Source of the DNA: Octopus sinensis
Lineage: Eukaryota
NCBI RefSeq assembly: GCF_006345805.1
Contig: NC_043000.1
Span: forward strand, 83,576,001 to 83,640,000
Length of the DNA: 64,000 nt
Reading direction: 5' to 3'
Part shown: positions 6,501-53,100 of the stretch, in pieces
Numbering within the stretch: the first letter of the stretch is position 1
Layout: each line of letters begins with the position of its first letter
The notes under the pieces: model-generated
Seen by the model: the letters and a program-made list of their open reading frames with translations, nothing else
The model's database searches: none
What the model was told of the DNA's origin: nothing
Program-made: the position numbers and the translations under genes

Positions 6501-7719
6501 ATAATGATAGGAATATCAATAATGTTAATAGTAGTAATGCTCTTGGTTGCAATTATAGAGTTAAATCCCACTGTCCGTTATTGGGCCACTGTCTAATCCA
6601 AAATGTAATTTATAAATGTACAATCATAAGTGAGGCTGGAAACTTTATATATATAGGATGTTCAGTAAATATGAAAAAACCTATCAATAACCATTTTTCA
6701 TCTTTTAGACTCAAACGTAAAGCCAATTGTACATCCTTATCTAACAAGGTTTGGAAACTGAAGGAAAACAGGATTGAATATCCCTAAAGGAAAACAGGAT
6801 TGAATATCCCTAAAGGAAAACAGGATTGATATCCCTAAAGGAAAACAGGATTGATATCCCTAAAGGAAAACAGGATTGATATCCTTAAATCTCTGACCAT
6901 GTGAAGGGTTCCTAAGCTTCAAAGTCCTTCTTTTCCAGATTGGTCTGCTTTTTGGCATCCTTCTGGCCTCAAGTCTAAAGTCACCAATAACTAGTCTATA
7001 TTGTGGGGTATATTCTTTACCAGGGATTGTCTTTGTATTTAAGAGCAACCATGCATCCTGCTGTCTGGTGAGAATGAAATTGATCTGGCTAGCAGAATCA
7101 CCTGATTGATAGGTTATCAGGTAGCTAGCCGGCTTTCTGAAGTTGATGTTGCAGATCAATAGGTTATTTGCATCACAGAATTCCAGGATCCTAGTTCCTT
7201 CTTCATTTCTTGTACCAACCCCATGGCCCCCATGGAAGATATCAGATTGCTGTCTGACATACCCATTAAAGTCTCCTGCTACGAAGATGAGATCATTGTC
7301 ACTCGTCTTTGAGGTAGCCTGCAGAAGAATATCATAAAAGTGATCCTTCTGTTCATTTGGTGAGCCCGCTTGTGGGGTGTGGGCAGAGATAATTGTAGCT
7401 ATACCATTCTGCAAGACTAGCCTGAGTTTAAATACTCTATCGCACAACCTCAGTACCTCTATGACCTTATCCACCCATTTCTCTGCAAGAAGTATAAGTA
7501 TGCCCACACCCCCTATTCCATCACTATTACCTTTCCAGAAGAGTTTATACCTATGTGCTTTGCCTGCGAGGACTCTGGCTGAAGCTCCTCTCCACCTTAC
7601 CTTTTGTACGCAACATACATCATCACGTCTCCTTTCAAGCATCTCTACAATCTTGCTAGACCTACCTTTCAGTGTGCCTACATTTACAGTGCCAGCTCTG
7701 AAAACTGAGTAAGAGATAT

Positions 7720-7766
<47 letters not shown>

Positions 7767-7932
7767 CCGCGATGAGGAATCAGTTTCTGACTGAAGAACG
7801 AAGGCTTTGAATGACCCGTTTGTCTTTTTGTTCGTCCCTTCGTGTATTTCACGTTATTTATTTAGTTGAACCGTCCAACCCATGCTAGCATGGAAAACGG
7901 ACGCTAAATGAATGATGATGGTAAAGGTTTAT

Positions 7933-7963
<31 letters not shown>

Positions 7964-8934
7964 CCATAGGTATGCATATAATACACTGGGAAATATATAT
8001 ACAAGGGGGTGCTGAAATGCTCCTGGCATTGGATAAAAGAAAATACTGGAGGATTGGTTAGTTATGATTTTATTCAACAAATTCCCTTCTCAGATTCACA
8101 CATTTATTGCAGCCCTCCTGCAGTTTTTCTAAGCCCTCAAAAGGTTGGGCCTTCAACCATGCTTTTCATGATACCCTTAAAGCTAGGAACTTTTCAGCAT
8201 TTATGCATATATACAAACACACACGAATATATACATATATATATATACATAGACATATATATATGTTTATGCTTATATACATACAAATACACACACACAC
8301 ACACACACATGCAATATTAAGAAATATTCTCTCTTTTCAGATTGCGTACCTATATGATCATACTAAAGATTTCTGTTCTAAAGTTGGCCGTGAGCTGTTG
8401 TCTGCTATTGCCCAAGTCCATCCAGTCACCATTTCATTTTTGATTCATAAACTACGAGATGTCCGAGGAAATATAGGAGGGGTGAGTTTATTGAGAATGG
8501 AATTCATTTCTGTTCGTTTCTGATCTCTTTCGTTGATCTATGTCTACGATATAATGAAATGTAATATGTGAAGATTTTTCTTTATATGTCTTGAGAAAAC
8601 ATTGCATGAAATTTTGTTGGTGCTCTAAAACCTTAAAAGACAACTGGATTAATCCATTACCAAACATTAATTTTGCTAGAAAGGCAAAAGTAGTGACTTC
8701 TCTCATTGTTTATCTTTTATCTTTTGTTTCAGTAATTAGACTGTGGCCTTACTGGGGCACTGCCTTGAAGATTTTTTAGTTGAATGGATTGACCCAGTTC
8801 TTATTTTTTTAAAACCAAATACTTATTCTGTCGGTCACTTTTGCTGAACCACTAAGTTATGGGGACATAAAAACACTAACAATGGTTGTCAAGTGGTGGT
8901 GGGGATAAACACACATAATGACTCACACACATAA

Positions 8935-8988
<54 letters not shown>

Positions 8989-11900
8989 GACAGGCTTCTT
9001 TCAGTTTTTGCCTACCAAATCCACTCACAAGGCTTTGGTTGTCCCGAGGCTATAGTAGAAGGCTATAGTAGAAGACACTTGCCTAAGATTCCACACAGTG
9101 GGACTGAACCAAGAGCAATGTGGTGGTGAAGCAAGTCTCTTACTACACAACCACATCAGCGCCTAAGATTAGATTATATATATTTTTCTAACAGAAGCTT
9201 CAGGCATGGTTATGTAGTTAAGAAGTTTGTTTCCTTACCATGTGGTCTTTGGTTCAGTCCCACTGTATGCCATGTTGGGCAAGTGTCTTCTACTACAGCC
9301 CTAGGCAGATCAAAGCCTCATGAGTGGATTTGATAGATGGAAACTAAAAGACGTCTGTTACACACACACACAAAAACACTTCTCCCCCACATGTGTGTGT
9401 GTATTTTTGTTTGTCCACCACCTACACTCAACAACTGGTGTTGGTTTGTTTATATTGCTCTAACTTAGCAGTTTGGCAAAAGTTACCAATAGAAAAAAGT
9501 ATCAAGCTTAAGAACAATAAGACAGTGGAGTCAATTTGTGCAACTAAACCTTTCAAGGTTGTGTCCCAGCTTGGCTGCAGTCCAATGAATGAAACAAATA
9601 AAAGATAAAAGAATAGCCTGATGTCTCTGTTTTCATTTGTGAAGGTTTCCTTTCCAAAAGAATTTGAAGCAACTGAAATTCATGTTATTCTTTACATGTT
9701 ATTCTTTACAAAAACCATTATCCAACTTTTGATATATCAAAAATTTTCTCTTAGTATTGGGTCATTCCATAAATAATGTGGTTTTTTCAATTGCATGAGC
9801 TAAAAGTTGGGTGGTGATGGGATAAACTACCTGCATCAACTTACTATAAAAGCAGGTAGTAATTTTACCTTTTCCATATTCTTAGTGCAATTTTGAAGAC
9901 TGCTGTTCGATTTTAACAGTTTTTTTTTTCAAAGCTATAATGGCAGTGACAAAGGAACATATGCAGCATATTTTGCTTCATGAGTTCAATAATGGCAACA
10001 ATGGAACAGAAAATGCAAGGAATATTAATGCAGTATATGGGAATTAGATAATAAGTGTGAGCCAGTGTCATTTGTGGTTCCAGAAATTCAGAGTTGGAAA
10101 CTACAGTCTAGAAGATAAGCTTTGTCCTGGAAGATCTGTAGAGTTTGACAAGGATGTCCTGTAAACTCTGTGGAACAGACTCCCATTGTAACTACTGAAG
10201 AGCTAACAGAGAAGCTTGGATTTGTTCAACCATTTATCGACACCTGCACTCTACTGGGGTCTGTGAAGCCAGAAGGCTTCATCAGGCCCAGTCAAATCTG
10301 GCAGTGTTTCTACGGCTGGATGCCCTTCCTAACGCCAAAACAATAAACAGTGACAATGATGTATATATTCATTCTTAATAGAGTCTCTATTTGCTGTTCG
10401 GCAATGTTTATTCAGACGCATTTTGTGATGTCGGGCACAAAAATACCTTAAGCTAAGCCTGAAAGCAATGAAGTCATAAAAGAATCATCCATAACTTGCA
10501 GTAAGCAACATTTATTAAAATAAAAGTATTCAGAACACAGAATAACATGTAACAAAAACAATTTGCACTCGAAGATAAATGAACATACAGCGAGGATGAC
10601 TTTCCAAAGGCTGAAGCAGTTTGAATGGGAAATGATGCCCCACCCACCATATTCGCCAGACATTGCCCCTTCTGATTATCATTTATTCCGCAGTCTTCAA
10701 AATCATTTGGACGGAAAAAATATGAATTCTGTAGATGAGGTCAGAACAGTACTGGAGGACAGATGGAAGAGCATGGTAGAAAATGAAGAAGAGTATATTT
10801 TAGATTAAAAAAGAACTTAGTTTATCTTAATTTTGAAAAATAAAAGTGTAAAAAAACTGCATTATTTATGGGATGAACCAATACTTTTTATTGCATTTGT
10901 TTTGTAGCAGGTCAAAATGTTGCACTGGAGGACTGAATAGTAAGAGGGCAGTGCATTTTACTGATTAGAGAGAGCTTTGGTTAATTAAGTTTATTGGGTT
11001 CTGCACTGCTAACCAAAGGATCAGTGGTTCGTGTCTTGTCTACAGTGAAGCAGTGTATTCAATGTCAAGACAGTTTTCATATGCCCATAGTTACTGTGAG
11101 TTGGGAATCAGCTGCTTTAAATAGTGGAAGTAAGGCAAAATTGTCAAGTGTCTTAATTTGCAGTACTGTGTACTCTTGTATAAGCATAGTGTGCTGATAG
11201 ATGTGTTCATTAACTTGGCTTGTCCTAGTACATTGCAGTGGTGATTCAACAGCTCAGTTATAATGCATCAGCAGGTAATTGTTTTACTGAATTCTATGAA
11301 CAAGAGCCTCCGGTGTCTCAAAGTCCCCTTACCTCAATGACTTGTCTTGAACATACATTATCTGAAAAGAGTAGGTGTGATTAACATATTCATGTTTAAA
11401 TCTATCAATGTATTAAGAATGAATATATACATCATTGTCACTGTTTATTGTTTTGGCGTTAAGAAGGGCATCCAGCCGTAGAAACACTGCCAGATTTGAC
11501 TGGGCCTGATGAAGCCTTCTGGCTTCACAGACCCCAGTAGAACCGTCCAACCCATGCTAGCATGGAAAACGGACGCTAAACGACGATGATGATGATGATG
11601 ATGGACTGAATTGAAAGGAGGGAGGGAAAATAAAGGTGCTAATCTTATGTGTGTAATTCATAAACATAGTTCTTTCTTTATTTTTGACAGATGGCGCTAT
11701 ATCTTTTTAAAGAATTACCCATGTATGACTGGCAGTTGGAGAATGCAGATTTGGCTATTCTTCGCTCCTGGTTAGTGAGTACAGATCTTAGTTCAACAGA
11801 ACACCTTCTGGGACGAACAATTCTTTCCAATCTGAACTGGGGACTTAATAAAGAGGTATGAAATATTTTTGATTCAATTTTTCTCCTAAAATTTGCATTA

Positions 11901-14900
11901 TTATTTTTGTTGTTTTTATTTTATTTTAAAATTATTGTTTTGTTTTATTCTCAAATATTTTATTGAACAATCTAGATTGAAATGAATTTAATTTTAAAAA
12001 AATCCAATTAGTTACATGAGACGCATCAACCTTTAATACCCTCTAAAAAAATACAAAAAAAAAAGCAAACAAACCTACTCACTTTAAGAATATATGAAAT
12101 ATTTGATTGATATTCTACCTATGTGTCCACTTCTTCTCTAATGTGTACAAGATCATCTGAATATTAAATCATTGAGAAAGTTGTTCTTATTTTGGAGACT
12201 AGGGAAGTATTAAGTGGTGATTTAAAAGTTAAATTGAGCTGTTGGACAATCCTGTAGGATTTCCTTTAATATCTTGCAACAATTATAATAATAATTCTTT
12301 CTAACTTTTGGTGCAAAGCCAGCACATTTGAAGGGAGAGAGAAGTTGACCTCTGTGGCATTTGAACACAGAAGAAATGCTGCTAAGCTTTTGTCCAGCAT
12401 GCCACCTTAACAACAATGATAATATAAAAATATTTATGAAGGCAGTGAGCTGGCACAATTGTTATTGCCCTGGACAAAAATGCTTAGTAGTATTTTGTCT
12501 GTTTTTATGCTATGTGCTCAAATGTGTCAGGGCCAGTTTTGTCTTTCATTCGTTCAAGGTCGATAAAATAAGTACCAGTTAAGCACTGGGGTCAATGTAA
12601 TTGACTTACCTTCTCCTGCTGAACTTGCTGGCCTTGTGCAAATGTTTGAAACCAATATAAAAATATTTATGAATAGAAAGAAAATAGAAACTGATGTATT
12701 TTGGCCACATGCATGACTGAGTAGTTATTTAGCTTGATACACAGTCACATGCTTGTAGGTCAGTACCATTGCATGCACTTCATGCAGGTTACTTCCACCA
12801 TAGTTTTGGCTTGTCCAAACCTAATGAGTGAAATTGAGTATGTGGTATCTAGTGCCCAGTTTAACACCACCATCTGAGCTTTCTGTACCTTTAGAATTGT
12901 TCATTTGATGCAAGTACCGTAAATCCTCGAGTATAATCCACACTTTTTTCCCCAAAATTTAAAGGTCAAAATCCCTATTGCTTATTATATATGAGGTTAA
13001 AAATGAGAAATATTTTCTAAGCAATATCCGAGTCTCTATTTGCTGTTCGGCAATGTTTATTCAGACGCATTTTGTGATGTCGGGCACAAAAATACCTTAA
13101 GCTAAGCCTGAAAGCAATGAAGTCATAAAAGAATCATCCATAACTTGCAGTAAGCAACATTTATTAAAATAAAAGTATTCAGAACACAGAATAACATGTA
13201 ACAAAAACAATTTGCAAACATATTTACATTCCCATTATTGTAATATGCATGCGCGGAATGTTTGTTCGACTAGGTGCTGCTGGCTTAATTACGCACAACT
13301 CAAGTTAGAGAAGTGGTGCATATTATACACAAGGTTTAGGTTTTTCAGAGGTACAACCCCCTAAAAATCCCCTGCGTATTATACTCAAGGACGGACTATA
13401 CTCGAGGATTTATGGTATTCAAACCAATTCTCCCTTTTCTCCACCAGAGAAAAATTAACACTGTTATCAGCTGCTTTTTATTTTCAACAATATCTATTAA
13501 TTATTCATATGCTTTCTTTTCAGAACACAGATCTTGCTCTTCCTCTCTGGATCCATCAATATGTGGCTTGTGTATTAGTTGAAGCTTATCACAATTATAT
13601 AACATCCAAACACTTAGGTTCAGTCTTTATGGAAGGTGTTAAGCAGGTAGAGTTCCCTATATTGGTTCTTTGAAAGTCTCCTCAATTTTTCATGAAAGCA
13701 GGTTTTTTTGCTTTGTAAAAAAATATAAATATTTCTTTCAAAATAATATAGTTATAATGTATAGCAACTACTTATTTGAAATAATTACCATAATTTTATC
13801 ATGTGTACCACAGGTGGCGTTAGTAGTGCGTCAGCAGCAAACCAATGAACAACAGTTCAGCAGCTGGGCTTGGGAACTTGTGTTTAAGCTTCATCTCCAC
13901 AATGATACCTTGCCACGCCCTTCATCATTTGAGCCTTCGACTAATTTAGTGGACATGGATAATATTCCAGAACTGAGAAAAGATACATTTTTAGCTTCTG
14001 TCCAACAAGGATTAAAAGTTGATAACCCAATTGCAATGTACGTTGCCATGACCATGACAAAATATGGACACGAGTAAGTATTGGCTTTATAAGTTTCTTA
14101 TATATTTAGAAGCAACTTGACATGTATTTGATATTATCGAACCTGAATTTGAAGTTATAAGAACTAGTTAAAGTGTGTTGGTAGTTTGAACTCTTCTCCC
14201 TTCTGTCATACAAGAAATGTTGTTCGTTTCCAGTCTTCTGTGATAAACATGTGGCCCTGGAGAAATATTACCTTACTTGAAAACAGGTGAGGGCTGGTGA
14301 GAGGAAAAGCTGTAGAAAATCTGTCTCAATAAGTTCTCTCTGACCCATGCAAGCAAGGAAAAATGGGTATTATTCAATGATGTTGATCATGATCATCAGA
14401 GATTAAATGATGCTGGTGAAATAGAGGTTCATAAGAAGGAACTATCTGATAAAAAGCTAACATATTTGGGTCAAAAAGTGGAAGTTGATGAAATGAATTT
14501 TGGGTTGTAATTAGGACTCATTTCACAAATCTTATTTCTTTTCAAATCATTAATTTATTTATTAGAAAGCATATAGGTATAAACTCTTCTGGGAAGGTAA
14601 TAGTGATGGAATAGTTGGTGTGGGCATACTTCTTGCAGAGAAATGGGTGGATAAGATCATAGAGGTAGTGAGGTTGTATGATAGAGTACTTAAACTCAGG
14701 CTGGTCTTGCAGAATGGTATAGCTACAATTATCTCTGCCTACACCCCACAAGCGGGCCTACAAAATGAACAGAAGGATCACTTTTGTGATATTCTGTTGT
14801 AGCCCCCCCCCCTCCCATGCTGGTGGCACGTAAAAAGCACTATCTGAACGTGATTGATGCCAGGTCTGCCCGACTGGCTCCTGTGCCAGTGGCAGGTAGA

Positions 14901-17900
14901 AAGCATCCATTACACTCTAGGAGTGGTTGGCGTTAGGAAGGGCATCCAGCTGTAGAAACATCACCAGATCAGATTGGAGCCTGGTGCAGCCACTGGCTCT
15001 CCAGACCTCAGTCAAACCATCCAACCCATGCTAGCATGGAAACCAGATGTTAAATGATAATGATGATGATGATGATGATGACGAATCATTCATCATTGGA
15101 AAGATTCTTTTTCTACGTTCTTATTGAAAAATAGTATTTTACAAACTAAATCTGAAATACCCATTAGAAATTATTTTTTTATGTATATTGTTGATTATGA
15201 AAAATATTTTTATTGTTAAATCATTTTCTTTTCTTGCTTTCAGTGTTGCTGAGTTCATTACTCATGGAATCCCCTTACTCTCCAAACTGAACAGCTTATA
15301 CTATACCAAAGCTGTTATACATATCATTGGACATTGCGTGCCCATGTTTTATAATCAGGGACAATATTTGATAGAAAATCAAGAGTGAGTTCATTGTACT
15401 TCATTTGTTTTTACATATTTACTACACTGAGAGAGTTAACTCTCCCTCTCAAATCATACCACAACTGTGTTATAACAATAAACACATTGAATACTATAAT
15501 GTAGTCCTAGATGTATGTAAAGTCTGCACTGTCATGGTTAGAAAGCTTTTGATCATAGTTTACTGATCTGTGGTTAAACAACAACAGTTTCAACTGTTTT
15601 CCTCAAAAGTGCTACCAACTAAACCAGACCAAACCAAACCAAACCAAACCAAACCACACCACACCACACCAAACCAAACCAAACCAACCAAACCAAACCA
15701 CACCACACCAAACCAAACCAAACCTGTTGTGTAGTGCTGAAGAGGACTGAGTTATATTGCTCTTTTATCCTTTTACGTGTTTTAATCATTTGACTGGCCA
15801 TGCTGGAGCACTGCCTTTTGTTGAGCAAATCGACTCCAGGGCTTATTCTTCATAAGACTAGTACTTATTCTATCGGTCTCTTTTGCTGAACCACTAAGTT
15901 ACGGGGACATAAACACACCAGTATCGGTTGTCAAGCAATGTTGGGGGGACAAACATAGACACAGAAACATATACGCACACCCATACATATATATATATAC
16001 ATATATACGACTGGCTACTTTCAGTTTCCGTCTACCAAATTCACTCACAAGGCTTTGGTCGGCCCAAGGCTATAGTAGAAGGCACTCGCCCAAGGTGCCA
16101 CACAGTGGGACTGAACCCACAACCATGTGGTTGGTAAGCAAGCCACTTAACTCACAGCCTCTCCTGTGCTTCTCAATATTGATAGCATTCTTTAAAAAAT
16201 TCTAAAATTTCTGTGGATTGAAAATTCTCAAATTTCTGCTTCCATCTATCCAAAAATCACTTTTATTTACTTCCATAGTTATCTTAAGGAGACAATTTTC
16301 CTATTAATAGCATCTTTAACCCTTCAGTATTTAAACTGGCCATATCCACCCCAAAATATTCTACATATTCTATGTTCAAACTGGCCAGATCTGGTTTCTC
16401 ATGTCTACCCTACAGAGTTATTTTAAAATAGACAATTACATCATCAAATTCTCGTAGATATGAGATAATGCACAATCAGTTAAAAACAATGTGAATAAAT
16501 AAGCATTTACAGACTAATTTGAATACTAAGAAGCTCTTACTGTAGGAGTCATAAATATTTAGATACTGGTCTTTGGTGTGAATTTTTTCATAATGTTTTC
16601 AAAATCTCAGTACATAAAAAATTATGTAATTTTTCTGCTTTTGTCTGCCAGTGCCCTGAATTGGTAAGTAACAATGCTTCTTTTAAGGTAAAAATAAATG
16701 CATTGATGAGTGACAAAATATTTCTCTCTGGTTGCCTTTATTTTGGCTTAGACTACTGTGGTTCTTCATATTCAGTGGGAATTCATATAGGAAACCTTTT
16801 TTTCCTCTTTCATTCATGTGGATTGAATATAATTGTCAGTTTCTTATTGAGATTGCTTGTAATGTAATTATATAATATGAAGTAAATAAATGGACAATGA
16901 GTGCTAGATAAAGAAGTGCAGTGAGTTATATGTGAAGAAGAAACATTGAAAATGCAGGGGAGAAAGTGATCAAGGTAAAGGGTGAAAGATGCTGGGAGTT
17001 CTGTTATTTTATTTACTCTATACTTATAAGATTATTCTAATTAAAGTTGTCATTATTATTACATATGATAAACATTTTGATATTTTAAAAAAAAACTTTA
17101 TATATTCTTAACTGTAAAATTTAAGGTAAATCTTGTATGAATTTATTTGCAGAACTATCAAACTTTGGTTTGTTAATTTTCGTTTTTCATATTTACAAAT
17201 AATAATTGGTGGAATAAATAAAATATTGATCACTTTTTGTCTGATTTAAGCAATACCATAAAATAATGGCATTTCATCATTAAAGACACTCTTCAGCGTG
17301 TCAGTCACTTTGAAGAGAACTTCTAAATTCCATTTTGAATTGATTTTATTAGTAACAAGGTGTAAGTGTCTGCCCCTTAACCCTCCCTAACATTGCTTGG
17401 GTTCAGAAATCATTTCCTCTTCAAATCTTTTAATGATTGGAGCAAGATTTGTTTAATATCTGAGCATATATATTTTAGATGAAATGCAATACTGAAGTAT
17501 TAATGATGCTTTCTGTATTCAGTTTGCCTTGAATTTCATAAGTTTGCCTTGTATTGCAGAAGATAATATATATAAATATACATTGCATGTTATGCTCAGA
17601 AGCAATACATTTTACCAGAATTTTTTGACTCATGATCCAGTAGAACAAACCATTCCAAATCCTATTTAGAATACCTGTGTAAATGAAGTAAGGACAGGCT
17701 AGCTTGTAATGACTTAGAGTTGTAAAATGTATAATAATACTGTATCTTTATATTTTGAAATGTTTTAATTGAAGAACGTATTATGTAATAGGCAAATTCT
17801 TTTTCTCTCTTGCATAATCATCTGAAACATGTGTATTAAATGCATTTAAAATATTAATATTTGGTTTTATTGGTTATTCCACAATACTCTGTGGAGTATA

Positions 17901-26752: not shown

Positions 26753-29700
26753 TATGCTACTGACATTTTCTGTTTGTTCAGTCAATATTGCTTTAAACTG
26801 TTTCACATTTAATTGAATGTAAAATGAATATTATTAATTAATCTTACTATAAAATATATATGGATTGAATTGCTGATATGAATCAGTTGTCTTTTAGGTT
26901 TCTTTATTTGACTTACTGGTTATTAGTTATTGTAATAAAACTAAATGTTAATCAGCTCATTAAGGCTAAATAAGTCAGATTGGGGTGTATATCTTACAGA
27001 TGGTAGAGAAATCATGTTGAGTTATGGGTGTATATCTCACAGCTGGTGTTGTCTTATGATCCATAGACAAGATGTTGAATATAGTTTTGTAAAAAATTAA
27101 AGAAATTTATACTTAGTTAAATTGTTGTTATTGGCTTATTTGGATTACTCTTGAAGATCTATTTTTTTCTTGGTGACAAAATTGGAAAATATCATTTTTT
27201 GATGTTTTCCTAATTTTATTTGTAGCATAAATGAACTGAAATGTTTTAAACTGTGATTAAAGCAAAACTTGTCATTCTTTTATCAAATATCTAATATATA
27301 ATAATAATTGTATTTGAAAAATATCTATATTTTCTCAAACTCCATCAAGTTAGAAAATCAGGTATTTGGTGCAATTTATAAATGTTACAAAGATTTTGAA
27401 ATCCAAGCCTCTTGCCATTCATATGTCATACCTATTTACAGTCGTCAATCAGATTTGCTTTACCCATACCATTTAGAAACATCAGTATCATATGATGCAC
27501 TATCATAGCTACAATATTTTGTACACTGTCTAAACTACGTAGCCCAATATTCTGTTTCAGTTACTTAATGTTTCCCTGCTGGTTTAAACTATATCAGCCA
27601 TCTTTATTCATATACTTCAAGTAATGATTACTCATAGAATTCAACCAAACCAGTTTTATATAAACTAAAACTATTGAAATACTATACTTGATCTCTAATT
27701 GTGGAGGGAACAAATGGAAGGGGTAGACTCCAGAAGATGTGAGATGAAGAGGTGAGGAAGGATCTTCAAACATTGGGTGTCACAGAGAGGATGACAAGGG
27801 ACCATGGTTCCTGGCAGTTTACTGTGTTTGAGAAGATACATCCAACTAAGTAAAATTGTCCTTGCAGACATGCATGTTCCTTGCATCCCAATTCAGCTGA
27901 GCATTCCTGTTGTGTCCCACTTTATAGACAACATATTTTGTTGTCTCTGTGGGACAACAGTGTACCTCACTGACTAACATTACTGACTGTATCAGTCCAC
28001 AGCAGATCCTAATTTTATTCCTTTATTGCCCACCAGGGGCTAAACACAGGGGGGACAAACAAGGACAGACAAAGGGATTAAGTCGATTACATTGACCCCA
28101 GTGCTTAACTGGTACTTAATTTATCAACCTCGAAAGGATGAAAAGCAAAGTCGACCTTGGTGGAATTTGAACTCAGAACGTAACAGCAGATGAAATACCT
28201 ATTTCTTTACTACCCACAAGGGCTAAACACAGAGGGGACAAACAAGGACAGACAAATGGATTAAATCGATTATATTGACCCCAGTGCGTAACTGGTACTT
28301 AAAGTCGACCTTGGCGGAATTTGAACTCAGAACGTAATGCCAGATGAAATACCGCTAAGCATTTCGCCTGGCGTGCTAACGTTTCTGTCAGCTCACCGCC
28401 TTAAACAACAGATCCTAATCTTGTGTGCTTGTGGCTGCTGGTGCTATGTAAAAAGCACTTGTGCCAGTGCCACTTAAAAGCATCGATGCCAGGCTGGGTA
28501 AAAGCACCCAGTACACTCTGTAAAGTGGTTGGCATTAGGAAGGGCATCCAGCCTTAGGAACCATGCCAAAACAGACAGGGAGCCTGGGCAGCTCTTCAGC
28601 TGGTCAGTTATTGTCAAACCACCAAACCTATGCCAGTATGGAAAACAAATGTTAAATGATGATGATGATGAAGATGGTGGTGGTAGTAGTGATGATGGCA
28701 GCATGGAGGTAGCAGCTTATAAGATACTTTATTTTAACAAAAAATGTCTCAAAATGTCACCCTGAGCCCTATATGTGTAGTGGGACCCATATTACATGCA
28801 TTAATGCACTAAACATTTTTTATTTGAATATGCGCTGCTGAAATGAGGGGTGCATCTAATGTGCCTGAGCATCTTTTATGCCTTTAGATACAGTAAATAT
28901 CATAGAGCTTTACATTAACATGTCTTGTTTCTAGTTATGTAATTATCTGATATGTAAAACTTCATGAATAGTTGTACTTGAAATATTTCATTGATAGCTT
29001 AAGATGTTTTAACTTGGAAACTTTTTTGTTTTGCAGAGTCCTTGGATGGAGTTAATTGATATGAATATGCTTACATATGAATCTGTAACGTTGGCACTTG
29101 TGTGGACTGAAGAAATTACTGTGAGTTACCATCATCAATATAAGCAGAAAAGTAAAACTGATTCTAACTTCAGAGTCAGTACTGGTTAGTATATTTATAT
29201 TTTCTTAGGTGAAGCACCTCATTTAGATTTTTATTTCCTAAATTTTCAGTTAATAATTACAAGAAGTAAAGAAAATTTTTGTTATTGGTTGCCAGTAAGA
29301 TGTAGAAGGATAGGTTCTGTCACATGGACTTATATATTTCATGAGGTTGATGTCTTCACTGAGACCCAAATGACATTGAATTCTGGGATTGCAGAGAAGT
29401 ATTCAGCTTTTATATAGTAAAATCATATTCACTGCAGGTATTTTGGAATATTTATATCTAAGTGTTTCTGTTTAGGAATAGCTATATGAAATTTTCTGAA
29501 AGTATCACCTGTGATAGACAGATGATGTCTTATATCTGCTGATAACAAATTCTTTGACCTCTGTCTGTCATTAACAACCATGGATAAGGATCCTAGTTGT
29601 CTGCCTTAATGGAATAGTGTTGTCTGTGGCTGAACAGTCCAACGCATGAATGGCAGTTGCTTCCACACAAGCTGCACTTGTGGGTTGTCCTGGTACTGTT

Positions 29701-32700
29701 TGGGTTGTAGTGTAGTCTGGTTCTGTCACTCTGATATAGTCTGTTTGAAAGGATCCAAGCCTGTTCAGTATGGTATGAAGGACAGGTTGTTGCCCATGCA
29801 GCATGTTTCCCCTACTCCCATCCTCCCCTACATCACTGATGAATCCAAAGGAATAGCACAGCCATTAGAGTTTGGCACCAGTATCATCACAGGAGTTGCC
29901 AGAACAAGGCTGTAGACAATGTCAAACTGCCTCAGGGACTCTGACTATTGATCCCCCCCCCTCAGGGTTTATACTCAGAGCCTTTCCCATGGTTAGGTAT
30001 AGCTGCAGGGCAGTGGGCATTTGCAACTCTATTTTCTTTCCACTATGTAGATGCCCCCCCTCCACTCCAGGCTATCAAGCTCCACTTTCCCAACTGACTT
30101 GCTAATTAATCCATAGGTTGGGAACAGTAATGGCTAAGAGGTGGTTCCATACTCTTCAGAATCCTGGAACTACTGAACCAGGGCCCCACTACTTTATGTA
30201 GTTTAAAATCATACCCAGATATATGCTAGCTTACTGTCTAACTGGCAGTCTGCAAGAGACAATAGTTTGTCCTCAGATATACATCTCCACAAACATCTTT
30301 CCATCAACAGAGCAATATAACCATTTAATCAATAAGGTGATCATAAATCAGTAAGGTGATCATAAATCAATTAGGTGATCATAAAATCACTAAGGTGATC
30401 ATAAAATAAATAAGGTGATTATAAAATAAATAAGGTGATCATAAAATCACTAAGGTGATCATAAAATAAATAAAGTGATCATAAAGTCAATAAGGTTTGT
30501 CATTTTTTTTGTTTGTTTTTGATTTTATTCTTGTGTCTTGTCTTTGTATTTTCTTTTCTAGCCACAACTCGAATTCTGAACCGGTTAAAAACACACAGCA
30601 TTCCACTAGGCCCCCCTCCTATAACTGATCCATCACCACCTGTACCAGAAGTGACTGTTACTGCACTTGAAGAGAAGTCTACCCTTATGTATATTATAAA
30701 TACAGATTTGAAAGTACTCTGCAACCATGCTAGGTAATAATATCAGTAAATTAATTCCTCAAATATTTTATTAATTGTATCGAGTGACATTTGTCAATAT
30801 GACCTCCTTTAACTTTTTCTCAAAGGCATGCACACACACACACACACTCACGCACACATATGTACACAACACTATCTCACTATCTATATAAAAGCAGTTC
30901 TCTTGTATCTATAATTAGTAAGACATGAAGTGTGTTAGTCTTTCCTCTTTCTGTTATCAGTTTTTGAGATCAGATCAATATTTTATTAAACTAGTTATCA
31001 TTCTAGTTTGCAATAAATGATGAAATATCCTCATGCTTCTGTCATCAAATGATGTACTCTGTGTACTCTTGTAGTTGAATGATATATTATTATCCTGACA
31101 GGAAAATGTAAAATCATTTGATGAATAATTTTTCACTTTGGATCTACCTATTAATGTATTATATTTTCCTTTCATTATTTTCAGAAATTTCTCCAGGCAG
31201 GTATCTAGACATATAACTATGGATTTAGAATACCTTGATCTGCTTCCTCAACTTTACAGCAATGAATGGAATCAGGTATATAGAACAACTGCTTTTAATA
31301 ACTTATCTTTGTCGTTTTCTACTTATCATCATCATCATCTTCATCATTTAACATCCATTTTTCATGCTGTTAAGGCCAGGGACCGCACCAGACTCCATTG
31401 TCTGTTCTGGCATGGTTTCTATAGTTGAATGCCCTTCCTAATGCCAGTCATTCCACAGAGTATGCTGAGTGCTTTTTATGTGGCACCAGCACCAGTGCCT
31501 TTAACGTGGAACTGGCATGAGTGTTTTTTTTATGTGATGCCAGAACTGATATTAATCCTGCTATGGTGGACAGGTCTCCTTGAGTACTATAATGCGCCAG
31601 ATATCTCAGTCCTTAGTCATCTCTTTCATATGGCTCTGTGTCTTGAGATTGACCTTCAATGTTTCATCCTATGTCTTCCAGGGTTTCCCTCTTCCACAAG
31701 TTCCATCCATTTTAAGTGATTGGCACTCCTTTATGTGACTGTTTACATCCATACACATCACTTAACCAAACAAGTGCAGCCTTCTCGCTTGCATACTGCA
31801 ACTAGTTCTTCTTATGCTCGGCTTCTCTTACAATACACTAAACATGCTGTTGTACGCATTTTATGAAAATTTGATGGTTGTTTTAGCCATATGCCATTTA
31901 CAGAGAATCTACTGGAAATACCTTATAGCACTATCATATCAAATATATTAGTATGTTACTCATTATGTGCTCTCTCTCTCTCTACCTACCTCCTCTCATA
32001 CATATAAGAATGGTGTCAGATTCACTCCATCTGTATGTTGCCTTAAGGCAAGTGTCTTTCACTATTGCCTTAGGCCAACCAAAATCTTGTGAGTGAATTT
32101 GTTAGACAGAAACTGAAAGAAGCCTGTCATATGTATGTATATTTGAGCATGAATGTGTGTGTGTGTGTTTGCATTGTCCTCGTCTTCACATCACATTCTT
32201 GTTGTAAATGAGTATCATTAATTTCCAATATTCTGCAAATGGGCAAATACTACCTTATTTGGAAACAAGCAACAGTTGGTGACAGGAAGGCCGTTTGACC
32301 ATAGGAAATCTGTCTTAATAAACTCTATCATGCGTTGGGCCTCATGGAAGCATCTGGCAGCCATACTGGCAGCACATAAAAAGTACCTATTGAGTGTTGA
32401 GCCTCACAGAGGCAATGTCTGATGCCAGTGTTGTGTAGCTTGTACCTGTGCAAGTGGTATGTAAAAAGCACCTTTTGAATGTTGGGCCTCACGGAGGCAA
32501 TGACATATGACAGACTTTTTGCAATATGCCATGCTTGAGAAGAAGACCCATCAAGCCAAATGAAATCGCAATCATGGCAGATACTGTTGTCACGCAAATG
32601 GTATCTGTGCCAGTGGCATGTAAAAGCACCTGTTACACTCTTGGAGTGGTTGGCATTAAGAAGAGTATCCTGCTGTAGAAACCATGCCAAATCAGACTGG

Positions 32701-35154
32701 AGGGTGAAGTCCCTTAGCTTGCTAGTCCTGGTCAAACCATCCAACCTATGCCAGTATGGACAATAGACACTAAATGATGATGATGATGAGGAGGATGATG
32801 GTGATGGTAGTGTGTGTGTGTGTGTTTATAATGTACCTATTTAATGTTTATGTATATACAAATTGGCTGAAACTTCAAAGTTACAGCCAACAATATTCTT
32901 GTGTAAGAGTAAAAATTAATACTCTACAAAAGTATAGAGTAACCCATCACATTAATGTAAAATTATTGTTTTTATTATATCTGAATATCAAAACAAAACA
33001 AAACACACACACACACATTTATAATATGCCTGTTAAAGTGCTGGTGTTGTTGGTATTGGCATATTTGTTTTATTTAAGCATATTATTTTATTTAATGTTA
33101 AAAACATTTGGTCTGTTTCTGAACTAAAGCTGTTGTATAAATCAAATTCATTAACATTAAATCTTTCAATTGTTGATAGGTCCCAGTAACACTAGAATGC
33201 AGGAGTACTATCAACTTTACCCACAAGTGTTCTGGTTCAATCACAACATCTGTAAGAGTAAGTATTTAGATATAATTCAGTGTTGCATTGTGCATTTTGT
33301 ATGCATGTTACTCTGCAGCACTTTCTCTTATGGTTGACATATTGTTTTTATCCTCTCATATTCTGCTCAACTTCTATCACTATTCAACATGATTTTCTTT
33401 TTTTCTCTCTCTTCACAGATTCACCGACCTCGATTATTGAGCCTCGTACTGACTGTAATAGTAATAGTAGTAGTAGTAGTTGTAGTAGTAGTTAAATAGT
33501 ATTCCTTCAAATTGCATGAATCTTCTGCATAGGAGTATAATTAGTTGAAGCAAGCATTATATATGAATTTCAGAGGGAGAAGGCTACAATTTTTGAGGGG
33601 TTAAACAATTGATTATACTTGATTGATACTTTATTTTTTACCCCTGGAATATTGAAAGACAAAGTTTATTATGAGCTTAGGCAGGATTTGAACTCAGATT
33701 GTAAAGGTTGGCAACTAAATGCAGCAAGGTATTTTATCTGATGCTCTATTAGCTCTGATAGTAATTTCTCTTGTTATGTACTAGATGATAAAAAAATGTG
33801 GTGAGACATAGTGGTGAAACATATCACATTAAATTATCTGTGGAATGACACAAATTTTGTTCTTACACATCTGTTTTGGAGTGAAATGAACATATGGAGT
33901 TCTAACTCAAATGTTATATGTTGTGCACTTTAATAGGCATGCTACAGGGGTTGGACAAAATACCGGAAACACATAGCATCATAATTTTGAAATATCTATA
34001 AAACCACCAAAAGCTTGTTTATTTTTATGTTTTTTGATTTATTATTAGTGTTGCTTAATATGTTTTGCTAAAATTGCTGTTTCTTTTCAGATATTACCAG
34101 AAAAAGGTAATTAGAATTCATTAAAATGACAGATCTATCAGACTTTCAAAGAGGTCAAATTGTTGGTGTTAGCATAATGAAAACAGCTGAAATGTTAGGT
34201 GTATCAAGAAGTACTGTCTCAAAAGTAATGATAACCTTTGAGAAAGAGGGAAAAACCTCCTCATTGAAACAAAACTCCGGAAGAAAACCAAAACTTTCAG
34301 ATAAGGACTGTTAGATTCTTACATGAATTGTTAGAAAGGATCACAAATGTACAGCTCCCCAAATTACTGCAGAGCTTAATGACCACCTTGAGAACCCAGT
34401 TTCCAGAAAAACTGTTCACTGGGAGCTGCACAAAGCTGGATTTCACAGGAGGGCTGCAATCAGAAAACCACTACTTTCAAAAACAAACATTGCAAAGCAT
34501 TTAGAGTGGAGTAAAAACCTACAGAATTGGTCCCTAGAGCAGTGGAAGAATGTTATTTTCTTAGACGAGTCATCCTTTACCTTATTTCCGACCACTGACC
34601 GAGTATAAGTGTGGAGACTGCCAAAAGAAGGATTTGACTCAGACTGCATTCTTCCAACTGTTAAACATGGAGGAGGATCTGTGATGATCTGGGGGGCTAT
34701 ATCTTGGATATCTGCTGGCCCAGTGGTTTCCCTTCATGGCAGAATTAATAGTCAAGACTAAACATTTTATCTGATCAAATTCATCCTATGCTTGCGGAAC
34801 TGTTTCTGGAGGGAAACGCAATCTTTCAGGATAATAATGCACCAATTCACGCAGCTAAAATTGTTACTGAATGGCATGAGGAACATTCTAGCAAATTTGA
34901 ACATCTTATCTGGCCACCACAGTCCCCAGATCTCAATATTATTGAACATTTATGGTTCATTTTAGAAAAACAAGTAAGGAGTCAATATCCTCCACCATCA
35001 TCACTACAAGAACTGGAGACTGCTTTAGCTGAAGAATGAACAAAAATTTCTTTGGAAGCAATTAAAACTTTGTATGAGTCCATACCTCGTAGAGTTCAAG
35101 CTATAATTACTGCTAAATTTGTTTGAAACTTTAAGACATTATTTTGTCCAACCC

Positions 35155-38100: not shown

Positions 38101-41100
38101 TTTGCTATATTATACTGCTATATTTAGATTCCTATAGTGTTATATAAATATATGGCTATTTTGTTATACTGCAGTGTATATATTCTTGTAGTGTTATACT
38201 GCTGTAAATATATTACTATATGATGTTATACATACTTCTGTATATTTATATTGTTATATATACTTCTGTATATTTATATTGTTATAGTGTTATGCCAGTA
38301 TATTCATATTGCTACAGAGTTGCTCAACGTTATATTTTTTCTATTTTCAGTACACTGATTAAGTTGACCCGAGCACGGACAGATGTAGACAAGATTGAGC
38401 ATCTACAAAGCATTGGTTGCGCCATCTTTTATTACCTTGCTAATATGGTTACTAATGAAACCAATTTTTACCCACCAACCCGACAGTTTTTTGCTTCTTG
38501 TCTTGATATTCTTGGGCAGGTAAGTCAGAATGAAATGGAATAATTGAGAGAAACTTTTCTTTTATTCTTTTATAAGTTTGCTGGTGCCATGTAAAATGCA
38601 CCCAGCACACTCTGTAAAGCGATTGGCATTAGGAAGGGCATCCGACCATTGAAACCAAGCCACATCAGACTGGAACCTGGTGCAGCTCTCCTGCTTGCCA
38701 GCTGTGTTCAAGCTACCCAGCTCATGCCAGCATGGAAAATGGATGTTAGAGGATGATGTTTCAATCATTGGGCACTGTCTTCTAGGGTAGAGTCAATTAT
38801 ATTAATTCAAGGATACAGTTGATTATATCAGCCCTAAAACAAAAGGATAAAACAAAAGGATAAAGTCCTTCTTGAGTCATATAGATTTGGGGTTACTGGT
38901 TACCCAGTTGCCTTAGCATGTAAGTGACTGAGACCACAACATCCTCCTGAATGGGACGCCAATTTATCACAGAATTACTAATTTTTGCCAGCTGAGTGAA
39001 CTAGAGCAACATGAAATAAAGTATTTTGCTCAAGAACACAACACATTGCATGGTCCATGAATCGAAATCACAATCTTACTGTCATGATTACAATACCCTA
39101 ACCACTAAGCCATGCACTTCAATCGACAAAATGATAAGAATTTTATTTTGTCAACCTTGCAAAGAAGAGCTCTGATTCAGAATTTAAAAGGATATAAGCA
39201 ATTACCAGAAGATATTCAGTCTAAAGTTCTACCAATTCTGTTAGCCACTGTTACCTATCGATCATAATCCCTTATATTTTAATAATCAATTTTGCTACCA
39301 TAATCATTGCTATAGAGTTAAAGTTGAAACACAGACATAGTAGCATGCTTGGCTAACTATCTTTCAGTATTCAGTATTGTTTCTTTACATTCTGAGTTCA
39401 ATCCCAGTTGTAGCTGATTCTGTAGATCTAAGTCACCAACTTTACAAAATTGCTGTTTTTTGGCTAAAGTGAAAAATTTTTAGAATTGACATCATCGTCA
39501 TCATCTCACATATTTCTTTGCTTTTCATCTTTCATATTTCTTTCTTTCCTTTCTTCCTTCCCACCTCTCCCTCCATCATCTTCTATCCAAGAGAATCACT
39601 TTGAAATAGGACCAGGAGAATCACATAGATATGGAATCAGAAGAATGACTTGGATATGTGGGCTCAGTGAAGAAAGACAAGGCAGAGTGGCTTTGATCTC
39701 TTAACATTGCTATATACAGTCATTCAATTTGGCAGCTCTGTTGGGATTATTCTTGCCTCAGATAACCCTAAACAAGAGTAAAATGTCAGGATATATCTCC
39801 TGTACTCATTATTAAAAATAATATTAGTCATCAAATAATATTGGTAATTTATTACACGAAATATTTGGCTTTACTTTCACCTTAACTCTTCCAATCATTG
39901 AACATACTCAACTAGTTCTCACCAAGCACAATTTTACTGTGAGGAATTTTGAGATATATTTATATATTTTCCTCCTTTTTGGAGTAGGTTGGATTGTTTT
40001 TATGAATTTGGATATTGAAGCATGTGCTGGTGGCATTTAAGAAGCACCCATTACACTCTTGGCATTGGTTGGTGTTAGGAAGGACATCCTACCATAGAAA
40101 CCATGCCAAGTCAGACTGGAACCTGATGCAGCTCTCCAGCTTACTTGTTCCAGTCAAACCGTCAAACCCATGCCAGTTTGGAAAGCAGACATTAAATGAA
40201 TGAGGATGAATGCTCTGTTTCAATGGTACACATTGAAATGCAAAGGGTTTTTGTGTTGGTTAGTTAAATACAAACAAAATAACTATCTATTTAAGCAAAT
40301 AATACAGTATTAGAAGCTAGATTTATACTCCTTAATAGCCACAATTGCTGCACATTATTTGTCGTGAGAGATTTTCTCTCTAAGTTTTTGTCTTCAAACA
40401 GTAACTGTTTTTGCTAAAATTTTTTATTAATTAAATATTTTACTTTTTGTGAAGTTGTGTGTTGAAGTAGAGTTATATTTGTGGATGATCATATTTTGCC
40501 AATTAAACACACACACTCTATATATTTGGTCTTCACTTCAGCTTTATTATTATTATTTTAGTTTCTTTGTTAAAGTTCTTTCATCACACATCCTATGACC
40601 TCTTCTGCAATTCTCTATCCCACATGTCTCCTCTTGTTCTGCTTATTCCATTTTGTCTATTTTACTGTTTCAGTATTATTTACATTGATTTAATACAGAA
40701 TTATTCTTAATGTTTTAATGTCTTGTTCCCTTGCAGGAATTTGTTCAGAAAATGCCTGACCAAAGCCCTGTTCTGTTGAATTTTGTGCTTGACCATCCTG
40801 ACCTTGCAGGTTTAATGTCTCCTCACTTCTTACCCAATCTGAATCCAGGCTGCTTTTTGGCTATGTATGAAAAACTGATTGTCCTTCGTTCATGTCAAAT
40901 AGATATGGCTTTCATGCTGCTATCAAAGGTAAGTCTTTAGAATTACACTTTAAAATGGCAGTTCGAGCATTTATAGATTTCTTTCTGAGTAAACATTCAA
41001 GTTTTACCCTTAGACCAGTGGTTCTCAACCAGGGTCCATATGGCCCTTCAGGGTTCATATGGCCCTTGGGGATCCATATTGGCCTTGGGAGTCCATATAG

Positions 41101-50100: not shown

Positions 50101-53100
50101 TTCAATGAAGATTTTTTTACTGTAGAGACAGGCTTTTCTGAAATATCTGTGGATCTTTTAATGCCAATATGGAACATGGACATTAAATGATATGAAAGAT
50201 GATGATGATGATATAATATCAGTGATTAATGTTGTCTCGATGCATCAATGGATGTGACTGTGCTGAGGTTTACCCTTCTTTGGTAGTGGAATTATAGTTT
50301 GAAATTTCTCCTTATTACATATAATACTGCCTTCAAATACTTTCATGTGGCTTCTGAATGGTTGTTTGTAAGATTTTTTTTTTTTATATTTGGATTGCTT
50401 TATTGACTTGTATTGTATCAGAACCAGAATGATTAGGAGAGGTCTTCAGTTGCATTTTGAGTTCTTTATGAAGAAGGTGTCTGTTGTTGTCACGTTAGGT
50501 TTCCAGTTAATTCAGAATACTATGAAACATCTTTTGGTTGTATTTCATTTATCAGAAACCTTCCTGCCAGGGTACCTTTACACTTGATTTACTTTTGAAT
50601 GCTTCACTAAAAGACTCTTAATTACTGTTGTGTTTTCTTTCTTTACAGCTTTATTATCACCTGTAGCTTACTCACAAACCCAAGACATACTTGGACGGCT
50701 GTGGATCTTCTATACCTCTATATTAGCATCGAGAAAGATACCAGTTTATTGTGTTACGTTATTGAATGTTGAATTGGCCTTGTTGCCATGGGATCAACTT
50801 ACAATTGATTTGCAGGTTGCAGAAACAATGTCAACTGTAAGTAAAACCCTTGTTTAAGAATCTGATTTATTGTTTAGAAACAGAGTTTTAATTTAAATCT
50901 TAGCATGTATCATCATCATCATCATCATCATCATCGTTTAACGTCCGTTTTCCGCGCTAGCACGGGTTGGACGGTTCGACCGGGGTCTGGGAAGCCAGGG
51001 GCCGCTCCAGGCTCCAGTCTGATCTGGCAGAGTTTTTACGGCTGGATGCCCTTCCTAACGCCAACCACTCCGCGAGTGGAGTGGGTGCTTTTTACGTGCC
51101 ACCTGCACAGGGGCCGAGGGGTCCGGCATTGGTCACGATCGGTTCGAGCTTTTAACGTGCCAGCGGCACGGGAGCCAGCCAAGGCGGAGCTGGCAACGTT
51201 CAGATGGTCTTACCGGCACAGAGGCCAGTCGGGGCAGCACTGGCATCGGCCACGTTCGGATAGTACTTTTTATGTGCCACCGGCACAGGCATCATAACTC
51301 CTATTTCCATTGATATTTATTTCGACGTTCATGTTCATGTACTTGACTCAACAGATCTCCTCAGGCACAGCAGGACTATCTGGGATCCGGGGTACTTTGA
51401 ATGGGCAGGGGCTATGTGGAACTGATGCAGGAAGCAGCCCGGGTCTTTGCAGTCACAGCATATCTCCAGAGATCTCGGTCCTTCGCCATTGCCTCAGTGA
51501 GGCCCAATGCTCTGAGGTCATGCTTGACTACCTCATCCCATGTCTTCCTGGGTCTACCTCTCCCCCTGATACCTTCAACCGTTTGGGAGTGGCACTTCTT
51601 CACACATCTCTCTTCATCCATCCGCAGCACATGACCATACCATCGCAAGCGTCGCTCTTGCACACCACATCTGATGCTTCTTATATCCAGCATTTCTCTC
51701 AGGATGCTTACACTCTGTCGTGCGTGCACACTGACACTACACATCCAGCGGATCATGCTAGCTTCATTTCTTTCAAGTCTACGCATGTCCTCTGCAGTCA
51801 CAGCCCATGTTTCATTACCGTGAAGCATGGCAGTTCGCACACATGCATCATACAATCTACCTTTTGGTCTGACGGAGAGACCCTTTGCCGCCAGTAGGGG
51901 TAGGAGCTTTCTGAACTTTGCCCAGGCTATTCGTATTCTAGTGGTGATACTCTCTGTGCATCCACCTCCACTACTAACTTGGTCACCCAGGTAGCGGAAA
52001 CTATCAACTACTTCTAGTTTCTCTCCCTGGAGTGTGATGGAATCTGTTTTCTGAGTGTCTGTTGTGTCTATTGCCCCTGTGCATCTGCCGCACATGAAAG
52101 CTATCTTATCTGTTAATTTCCCTTTAATGTTGCTGCACCTCTTATGCGTCCATAGCTTACATTGGGTGCATCTTATGGAGTTTCTACCTGTACCTTTCCT
52201 ACAGATTGAGCAGGGCCACCTACCCGAGGGGGTGTGTGCTGAGTATGCCTTGCTGCTTACTATTACTTTGGTTTTTGCTACATTTACTCTAACTATAAAT
52301 ATCTCTTGTTTTACTATTTTCATTTTAATGATAAAATTAATCATATAGAATAGGAATAACTATTTGATGCTAATTAGCTTTATAGAGCTAGAGAGGAATA
52401 ACAGAAATGTTAAAGGAATTTGTCTCATGCATTCTCTAATTCTACTGCAAGGAGTTTGTTTGTATAAAGTCTAAAAGAACAGTGTTTCCTGCATGCAAGT
52501 TGCATAACTATTTAGAACAACCTTGTGTTGGCAGACTAGTCAACTGCAGTTTTTATCTGGATATGTTCACTTCCATGATAAATATATTGAGAAAATATCA
52601 CAAATTATTATTAACATATTTTTGGTAGTAGCCCCTCTCTGCTCATAGAAATCTCCTCATCCCCTAGCATGAAGCTGACACCCCACCACTACTAAGGTTT
52701 GTAGTCCTGAGAGCTACATGACAATCTCAGTAGTGCAGGTAGCACAAAAAAAGCACCCAGTCCATGCTGTAAAGTGGCTGGTATTAGGAAGAGCATCCAG
52801 CTGTAAAAACCATGCCAAAGCAGACTTTGGAGCTCAGTGCAAGCCTTGAACAAACCATGCTAGCTTGGAACACAGATGTTAATTGTTGTTGATGATGATG
52901 ATATAAAAGTAGTGTTACACAAATGGTAACAAAACGTGGCTATAAAAAGTGGTGACCATCTATAAAAGTAACATTGTCAACAATTTACGACATATAGAAG
53001 TTAATTTGTTGGTAATATTTGATTAGAGTATAAAGTTTATAAAATTTGTAATTGAAGATTTTAGGTTTAAACTTTATTTTCTGATTGAGTATTTTGTGAT

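Follow-up and report, generated by a model that had tools for sequence, protein, structure and literature searches.

The predicted EPG5 gene of Octopus sinensis harbours in one of its introns a dead mariner transposon that carries, between its two arms, a block of foreign DNA that was copied from two loci less than 3 kb away. The stretch analysed here, referred to as the window, comprises 64,000 nucleotides (contig NC_043000.1, positions 83,576,001 to 83,640,000), and the mariner relic occupies positions 9757-10881 on its + strand. We consider it probable that the block was made in place by a microhomology-primed template switch that used two donors and returned to its origin 7 nt behind the point of exit, that is, by gap filling of the type attributed to break-induced replication that microhomology mediates (MMBIR) or fork stalling and template switching (FoSTeS). 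The event is likely to represent a germline mutational scar in a mariner that was already dead, with no apparent function.

When the window was compared with itself by BLAST, the block was resolved into two pieces. Piece A (10250-10380, - orientation) is an inverted copy of 11411-11541, identical to its reverse complement at 130 of 131 positions (E = 1e-62), and the sole mismatch is a C at 10329 against the complement of an A at donor position 11462. Piece B (10381-10567, +) is a direct copy of 13030-13216, identical at all 187 positions (E = 1e-94). In the self-comparison of the 64 kb, these two were the only dispersed duplicates of at least 40 bp and at least 95% identity. The block is flanked by the heptamer TGCACTC, at 10245-10251 on the left (+), the putative departure point, and at 10564-10570 on the right (+), the putative re-entry point; the whole window contains five instances of this heptamer on the + strand and a single one on the - strand. 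Piece A shares TC with the left heptamer, and the last 4 nt of piece B, TGCA, belong to the right one as well. The size of the insert is 312-319 bp, a net gain of 312 bases plus a 7-bp duplication. An earlier sequence-only reading of this DNA had reported the two identities, the heptamer at both ends, the TC and TGCA overlaps and the passage of piece A across the junction between a short interspersed nuclear element (SINE) and its flank, and all of these statements were reproduced exactly.

Each of the three junctions can be read directly. At the left one, mariner sequence ending in ...CACCTGCACTC meets the inverted donor (...GGTTC|TACTGGGG) with a 2-nt microhomology, TC. The junction between the two pieces at 10380/10381 (...TTCTTAATA|GAGTCTC...) is blunt, with 0 nt of microhomology. 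At the right one, the donor (...CAATTTGCA|AACAT) has a 4-nt microhomology, TGCA, in common with the mariner (TGCA|CTCGAAG). Past the 7-bp repeat, the outer junctions thus show a further 2 and 4 nt of identity, for which the chance is about 1/4096 under blunt ligation of a ready-made fragment, and the 7-bp repeat itself is expected by chance with a probability of about 6e-5 (once in about 16000). Since this extra identity and the repeat are both improbable by chance, the ends were made by priming or annealing and not by blunt joining.

Both donors are located downstream of the insertion point. Donor 1 (11411-11541, +), at a distance of 1.16 kb, lies in the same intron as the mariner, and donor 2 (13030-13216, +), at 2.78 kb, lies in the next one. 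Most of donor 1 is part of a SINE copy with a (GAT)n tail (11453-11603, +), to which at least eight other copies in the window can be aligned, so that 89 bp of piece A are SINE and the other 42 bp single-copy intron flank. The SINE copy next closest to piece A is only 89% identical. Donor 2, and with it piece B, corresponds to the interior of an element of about 500 bp bounded by terminal inverted repeats (TIRs), a putative Tc1/mariner-type miniature inverted-repeat transposable element (MITE) at 12915-13417; its TIRs (12915-12939 and 13417-13393) agree at 23 of 25 positions, TA is present on both sides, and the element is single-copy in the window and absent from the sequences L001-L084 used for comparison. 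The claim that a TIR-bounded mariner now carries host intron, SINE and MITE-interior DNA was therefore borne out when the matches were mapped. The copy in the insert is truncated at both ends, while donor 1 is continuous with the full SINE and its flank, the SINE running 62 bp further at the donor. Since the donor SINE continues past the copied part and related mariners lack the insert, the mariner is the recipient, and on these alignments the direction of copying was from the donors into the mariner. As both donors lie within 3 kb of the target, the event took place at this locus after the mariner had inserted.

The SINE portion of donor 1 also allowed us to date the copy relative to its source. 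Of its 89 positions, 15 depart from the majority consensus of the family, and 14 of these 15 private substitutions recur in the insert; the copy was therefore made late in the life of that SINE copy. The remaining position is 11462, at which the donor A is derived and the insert keeps the G of the consensus. The mismatch is therefore a later change of the donor or an allelic variant and not a copying error, and this one donor-side difference gives the copy an evolutionary history of its own. By this comparison, the insertion is young relative to the elements involved. In the repeat calibration for Octopus vulgaris, Jukes-Cantor (JC) distances of 0.065, 0.09 and 0.2 correspond to about 18, 25 and 56 million years (My), respectively (PMC13282606). 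Assuming a similar rate, one difference in 318 bp gives a rough age of ~0.4 My for the insertion (Poisson range ~0.01-2.4 My), and the divergence of the SINE copy from a seven-copy consensus, ~17%, would place that copy roughly at tens of My. The proposal that the insert is much younger than the mariner is thus supported by the donor-private SINE changes and by a mariner frame full of stops and frameshifts; the argument originally offered for it, which relied on the mismatches between the mariner TIRs, is a weak one, since the two TIRs of a mariner may differ from the start.

The SINE, about 150 bp long including its (GAT)n tail, is present in at least ten copies of 70-90% identity in the window, among them those at 1728-1874, 14927-15077, 28529-28680, 32650-32797, 38623-38758, 40069-40209 and 50914-51064. 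It is frequent in the EPG5 locus of Argonauta (L084) as well, and the family therefore appears to be older than the split of the two lineages. No Rfam match was obtained in the window, the SINE included.

The host element has the structure expected for a mariner, with TA target-site duplications at 9755-9756 and 10882-10883, both read directly and matching each other, TIRs that agree at 20 of the first 22 nt (31/35 in the BLAST alignment of 9753-9787 with 10885-10851), an HTH_48 domain in its left arm (E = 2e-16) and a C-terminal third matching the Mos1 transposase. The native left arm (9757-10247, +), with TIR, 5' untranslated region and helix-turn-helix (HTH) domains, ends in ...CGACACCTGC and matches Mos1 residues 7-105; the right arm (10571-10881, +) encodes the C-terminal third of the transposase (HTA...), matches residues 246-316 and is securely native from 10584. 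Both arms match SETMAR too. Between them about 140 codons (~420 bp) of the catalytic core, Mos1 residues ~106-245, are gone, and about 19 more codons are missing near the C terminus; if the missing codons are restored, the 806 bp of the relic without its insert become a canonical element of ~1.28 kb. Since the region of the first catalytic D of the DD34D domain is deleted and that of the second disrupted, the mariner is a non-autonomous relic.

The position of this internal deletion matters for the interpretation of the insert. Three related mariner copies fetched from the JGI metagenome samples 3300002938 and 3300002931 (L001-L003, 75-79% identical) align with the relic as far as 10247; beyond it, their sequence is GTGCCATCGGAAAAG, in place of the ACTC and the insert of the window, and they carry nothing that resembles the insert. 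Because their match stops at 10247, the native left arm ends within the left heptamer (TGC|ACTC), of which TGC is native mariner and the final TC overlaps donor 1. On the other side, no clear match was found between 10569-10583 and the HDNARPH codons that are conserved upstream of HTA in 23 relatives, and the window offers no other template for the 13-20 nt that precede 10584. The deletion junction is consequently somewhere in 10247-10584, and by these alignments the insertion point is 0-20 nt from it. The three copies (L001 2876-3427, L002 2820-3392, L003 2847-3389) represent a MITE-like derivative of ~570 bp in which the left ~540 bp are joined to the right TIR. L001 has the frameshift of the window copy (LGF.QPFIDTC), and L002 and L003 keep an extra ATTT and read GHLTIHRH and GHLIIHRY, respectively. 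They are found on contigs of 25-51 kb of animal host DNA, and the SINE of the window is absent in the 19 kb that were fetched. A protein search detected no close full-length relative of the mariner, the best identity being 66% for either arm: the N-terminal fragments P0002, P0006 and P0007 (64-66%) belong to a different, shorter deletion family, and the C-terminal fragment P0034 reached 66%. When metagenomes were scanned with the C-terminal peptide, amino-acid identity did not exceed 68%, with nucleotide matches only over the PHPPYSPD core.

We also observed an imperfect inverted match between the 16 nt that follow the right heptamer (10569-10584, TCGAAGATAAATGAAC) and mariner positions 10226-10241: the reverse complement of GTTCAACCATTTATCGA is TCGATAAATGGTTGAAC, which has 13 matches and two indels relative to 10569-10584. 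This match could be a trace of snap-back synthesis at the older deletion junction; the reconstructed empty site forms no significant hairpin, its fold being no better than that of shuffled sequences (z = -0.42).

From the anatomy described above, we infer a course of events; the sequence of the jumps, what triggered them, which polymerase acted and a pre-existing deletion of ~420 bp are all part of the reconstruction. The trigger would have been a stalled fork or a break inside the mariner, and not transposition. The nascent + sense strand would leave its template just after ...CACCTGCACTC (TGCACTC), prime with TC on the + strand template at 11541 and be extended leftwards for about 130 nt to 11411, out of the SINE and into unique intron. 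It would then jump, free of microhomology, to the - strand template at 13030 and be extended rightwards for about 185 nt to 13216, from where TGCA would re-anneal to the original template 7 nt behind the exit and synthesis would resume. Such a return slightly behind the departure point would yield exactly the 7-bp repeat. Each parental strand holds one of the two donors ahead of the exit, less than 3 kb away, as might be exposed by an uncoupled, stalled rightward fork; the same product could be obtained from a resected double-strand break via synthesis-dependent annealing, and the series can be read from the right end too. Identifiable nearby templates and microhomology at the switch points (TC at the exit, TGCA at the return, 0 nt from donor 1 to donor 2) are both found here, as in templated insertions. 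The two-donor insertion made in place, with microhomology at its outer ends and a return to the origin, which the sequence-only reading had put forward, is thereby supported by the junctions and by the proximity of the donors.

Several observations weigh against this interpretation. The join between the two pieces lacks microhomology, and with lengths of 131 and 187 nt and distances of 1.2-2.8 kb the pieces are beyond the 100-bp template window of MMBSearch (PMC8421209). If the insertion and the deletion were independent events, their co-location would have a probability of about 2-5%, and this proximity hints that deletion and insertion were one event. Twin-primed reverse transcription of a + strand pre-mRNA predicts the same anatomy. 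Finally, the composite is read from a single assembly. A 25-mer specific for the locus and common to the filled and the empty allele gave 0 matches in JGI metagenome contigs, and exact-product look-ups for three ORFs (open reading frames) of the window, two of which span the junctions of the insert, returned nothing on record.

That deletion and filling were a single repair is, in our judgement, unlikely, and it deserves to be spelled out. Filler DNA at internal deletions, as left by abortive gap repair, is classic for derivatives of Ac/Ds, the P element and mariner, and the relic resembles these in being internally deleted and in carrying, at its deletion junction or beside it, foreign DNA of local origin. 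Under this explanation, one repair of a full-length dead mariner, by abortive gap repair or by MMBIR with multiple switches, would have skipped ~420 bp and taken up two local fillers: the strand would pass from CACCTGC to a CTGCAC-like site ~420 bp ahead, copy ACTC, then donor 1 and donor 2, and come back to TGCA there. The insert does lie within ~20 nt of the deletion junction, with the native left arm ending at 10247 and the right arm secure from 10584. Moreover, the LH of Mos1 (FLHDNA motif, before the second catalytic D) aligns to CTG CAC at 10563-10568 of the window, so TGCAC is possibly a native part of the right arm, in which case no second event would be needed to account for the heptamer. 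Active Tc1/mariner families have been reported in octopus genomes (PMC13282606). However, the premise is a native right arm reading TGCACTCGAAG, for which the closest relative detected has only 68% amino-acid identity, and 10569-10583 is unlike the conserved HDNARPH codons of the 23 relatives. Four switches would be needed at once, and an old, degenerate full-length relic would have to survive to about the last 0.3% of sequence divergence. The filler here is far younger than the decay of the element, in contrast to abortive gap repair, and the 7-bp duplication, unlike in that process, suggests that the junction preceded the filler: it needs one pre-existing contiguous CACC-TGCACTC-GAAG site that spans or abuts the deletion junction, and therefore favours a deletion before the insertion. 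The order of the two events also decides what the empty allele looks like. The allele predicted by the sequence-only reading, cacctgcactcgaagataaatg, holds only if the ~420-bp deletion came first; that reading had overlooked both the deletion and the end of the match at 10247, and its prediction may be wrong.

A template of RNA, likewise overlooked at that time, would reproduce much of what is seen, and yet we regard it as highly unlikely. Unspliced + strand EPG5 pre-mRNA would have been reverse-transcribed, either by target-primed twin priming by a long interspersed nuclear element (LINE) or in the repair of a break from nascent RNA in cis. In twin priming, the bottom strand ...GAGTGCA would prime on ...UUUGCA at 13213-13216 and the top strand ...CACTC on GA at 11540-11541, and the two cDNAs would be joined and leave a 7-bp target-site duplication. 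As in the twin priming of L1, the insert shows a 7-bp direct repeat, an inverted upstream and a direct downstream piece that one transcript could supply, and a microhomology at each of the two priming sites; EPG5 is encoded on the + strand, with both donors intronic and in the required order. Remnants of a LINE endonuclease and reverse transcriptase are present in the window, and LINEs are active in octopus genomes (PMC13282606). In contrast to L1 products, piece B ends in ...AACAAAAACAATTTGCA with neither a poly(A) nor any other tail, nothing evident marks 13216 as the 3' end of an RNA, the two pieces consist of intron only, and ~1.5 kb is skipped between them. The chief objection is that there is no reason for a retro-insertion to land 1-3 kb from its source, within 3 kb in a genome that we assume to be gigabase-sized like those of other octopuses. 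Only the version with nascent RNA in cis escapes it. There is a very slim chance that a reverse-transcribing polymerase, acting in cis while a break in the intron was being repaired, copied the insert from the nascent pre-mRNA of the gene; if so, the closeness of the donors would reflect co-transcriptional proximity, and RNA-templated break repair would have a natural example here in the germline of an animal.

Since copies as local and as nearly perfect as these come from a single assembly, a chimeric molecule or a faulty gap fill could also have placed them inside the mariner. Amplification chimeras are typically inverted, local and joined by microhomology. We nevertheless consider an assembly or library artefact quite unlikely: joins of 0-4 nt are impossible from overlap or k-mer assembly, the window contains no N run, the sequence returns cleanly to the mariner with a 7-bp duplication, and no other such duplicate exists in the 64 kb. 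The consensus SINE base in the insert, opposite a derived base in the donor, mildly favours an independent history over a copying error. It is extremely improbable that the 312-bp block transposed in as a mobile composite and thereby duplicated 7 bp of its target, or that the mariner was the source and the 'donors' are the copies. Except for the 7-bp direct repeat flanking the block, nothing points that way: there are no terminal inverted repeats, no tail and no Helitron ends (no CTRR end, and the block is not inserted between A and T), piece A includes 42 bp of single-copy intron, both sources are less than 3 kb away, and related mariners are without the block. A Helitron or other mobile composite was ruled out by the absence of matching termini, and reverse copying by the extension of the donor SINE beyond the copied part. 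Copying in one step from a haplotype inverted between 11410/11411 and 13029/13030 was ruled out as well, since the inversion would include an EPG5 coding exon.

The template switch with two donors thus remains the reading that we favour, and it can be compared with known systems. Pack-TIRs are defined as elements with 100-5000 bp of foreign DNA between two arms and both termini kept, and with a parent that is one unique copy of at least 90% identity, has a length ratio of 80-120% and no transposable element within 100 bp (PMC8277862). For single-copy Pack-TIRs of animals, 57% of the parents are found within 15 kb, mostly at less than 5 kb, the median microhomology is 2 bp, and capture takes place long after insertion of the element, by 'transposition-independent gap filling' (Tan et al. 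2021, PMC8277862). The octopus insert likewise sits between the arms of a TIR element that has kept both TIRs and its TA sites, is more than 90% identical to parents on the same chromosome, and bears the hallmarks of gap filling (parents in cis within 15 kb, microhomologies of 2 and 4 nt, late capture). It differs in that it has two parents, in opposite orientations and joined bluntly, instead of one; that these are repeat-associated (SINE plus flank, MITE interior); that no exon was captured; and that the breakpoint is at an internal deletion of ~33%, compared with a median gap of 4.6% in that study (PMC8277862). Since the parents are two and repeat-associated, the pipeline of Tan et al. would discard this case.

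The MMBIR signature of templated insertions (MMB-TI) is an inverted nearby template flanked by microhomologies, and MMBSearch detects templates within 100 bp only and insertions from 10 bp up to read length (PMC8421209). The insert shares with MMBIR/FoSTeS products the inverted nearby copy, the flanking microhomologies, the serial switches and the return with a small duplication. In contrast to them, its templates of 131-187 nt are 1.2 and 2.8 kb away, and the event is fixed or segregating in the germline of an invertebrate, not in a somatic, cancer or copy-number-variation context. Inserts made by DNA polymerase theta, or by synthesis-dependent microhomology-mediated end joining (SD-MMEJ), are usually a few to a few tens of nt long, typically less than ~50 nt, and copied close to the break. 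The pieces found here are about ten times longer and come from kilobases away, and, by general knowledge of these size ranges, their length and distance fit the MMBIR/FoSTeS class better than typical polymerase theta inserts. Microhomology-primed copying of flanking DNA from direct or inverted templates is common to that pathway and to our insert (e.g. PMC4032859, PMC5068794).

What makes the locus useful is that it is an unusually legible multi-step template switch, with donors, three junctions, direction and relative date all within one 4-kb stretch. Pack-TIR gap filling has been described in UCSC-hosted animal genomes, including those of primates, frogs, alligators and flies (PMC8277862); the insert suggests that it operates in a cephalopod, too, and that it can stitch together two parents from different introns, a class which standard Pack-TIR screens discard. 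The case is a clean instance of a mutation type already known, but an ordinary one, and its two parents, two introns and deletion scar are uncommon but unsurprising. Its value is that of a mechanistic example and possible polymorphic marker, not of a new biological system. With both TIRs and TA sites intact, the composite is in principle open to mobilisation by a mariner transposase.

The host gene was identified through the ORF 60104-60487, which in an exhaustive representative protein search matched a protein of 2715 residues with 76% identity. This protein, GAB1606783.1 (P0121), is annotated as 'ectopic P granules protein 5 homolog, partial [Argonauta hians]', and its residues 709-2612 match 34 exon-like segments on the + strand between 386 and 62918, with 61-97% identity (tblastn). 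Judged by these matches, the window is most of an octopod EPG5 gene on the + strand. The mariner and donor 1 share the intron between the exons 8335-8490 (+; P0121 residues 910-961, 87%) and 11691-11855 (+; residues 959-1013, 89%, tblastn); the latter separates the two donors, and donor 2 lies in the adjacent intron, 11856-13511, closed by the exon 13512-13649 (+; residues 1010-1055, 85%). The concatenated translations of three candidate exons gave no match in a word-index protein search, although one of the three led to the Argonauta protein in the exhaustive search, so a negative from the word index is weak evidence for eukaryotic genes of this clade; in Pfam, too, the candidate exons had no match. 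No function was seen for the insert and no evident effect on EPG5.

The introns compared are several times longer than those of Argonauta (3.2 versus 0.65 kb and 1.66 versus 0.66 kb). The orthologous introns of Argonauta (L084, ~650 bp each) contain neither the mariner nor the TIR-bounded element, and they are too short and diverged to inform on the empty site. Positions 13169-13223 of L084, in the intron orthologous to that of donor 1, show a SINE-tail-like match of 76% to 11545-11599 of the window, at a similar distance upstream of the same exon; either an ancient SINE that is orthologous or just a (GAT)n microsatellite could account for it.

Other repeats and ORFs were noted in the window. 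On the - strand, 6860-7852 is an ORF of 330 codons whose endonuclease/exonuclease/phosphatase domain falls just short of the Pfam cut-off (E = 8e-5); the ORF probably represents the endonuclease portion of a LINE remnant, and a (TA)n run and a tandem repeat of 25 bp x 5 (6761-6889) flank it. The ORF 51412-52344 (-), with 310 codons and a PHD-finger match (E = 2e-5), is likely part of a retroelement, and an ORF of 195 codons overlaps it on the opposite strand. Next to the SINE at 1728-1874, a 63-bp tandem repeat (1899-2124) with 3.2-3.6 copies of 90-94% identity gives rise to long spurious ORFs in two frames.

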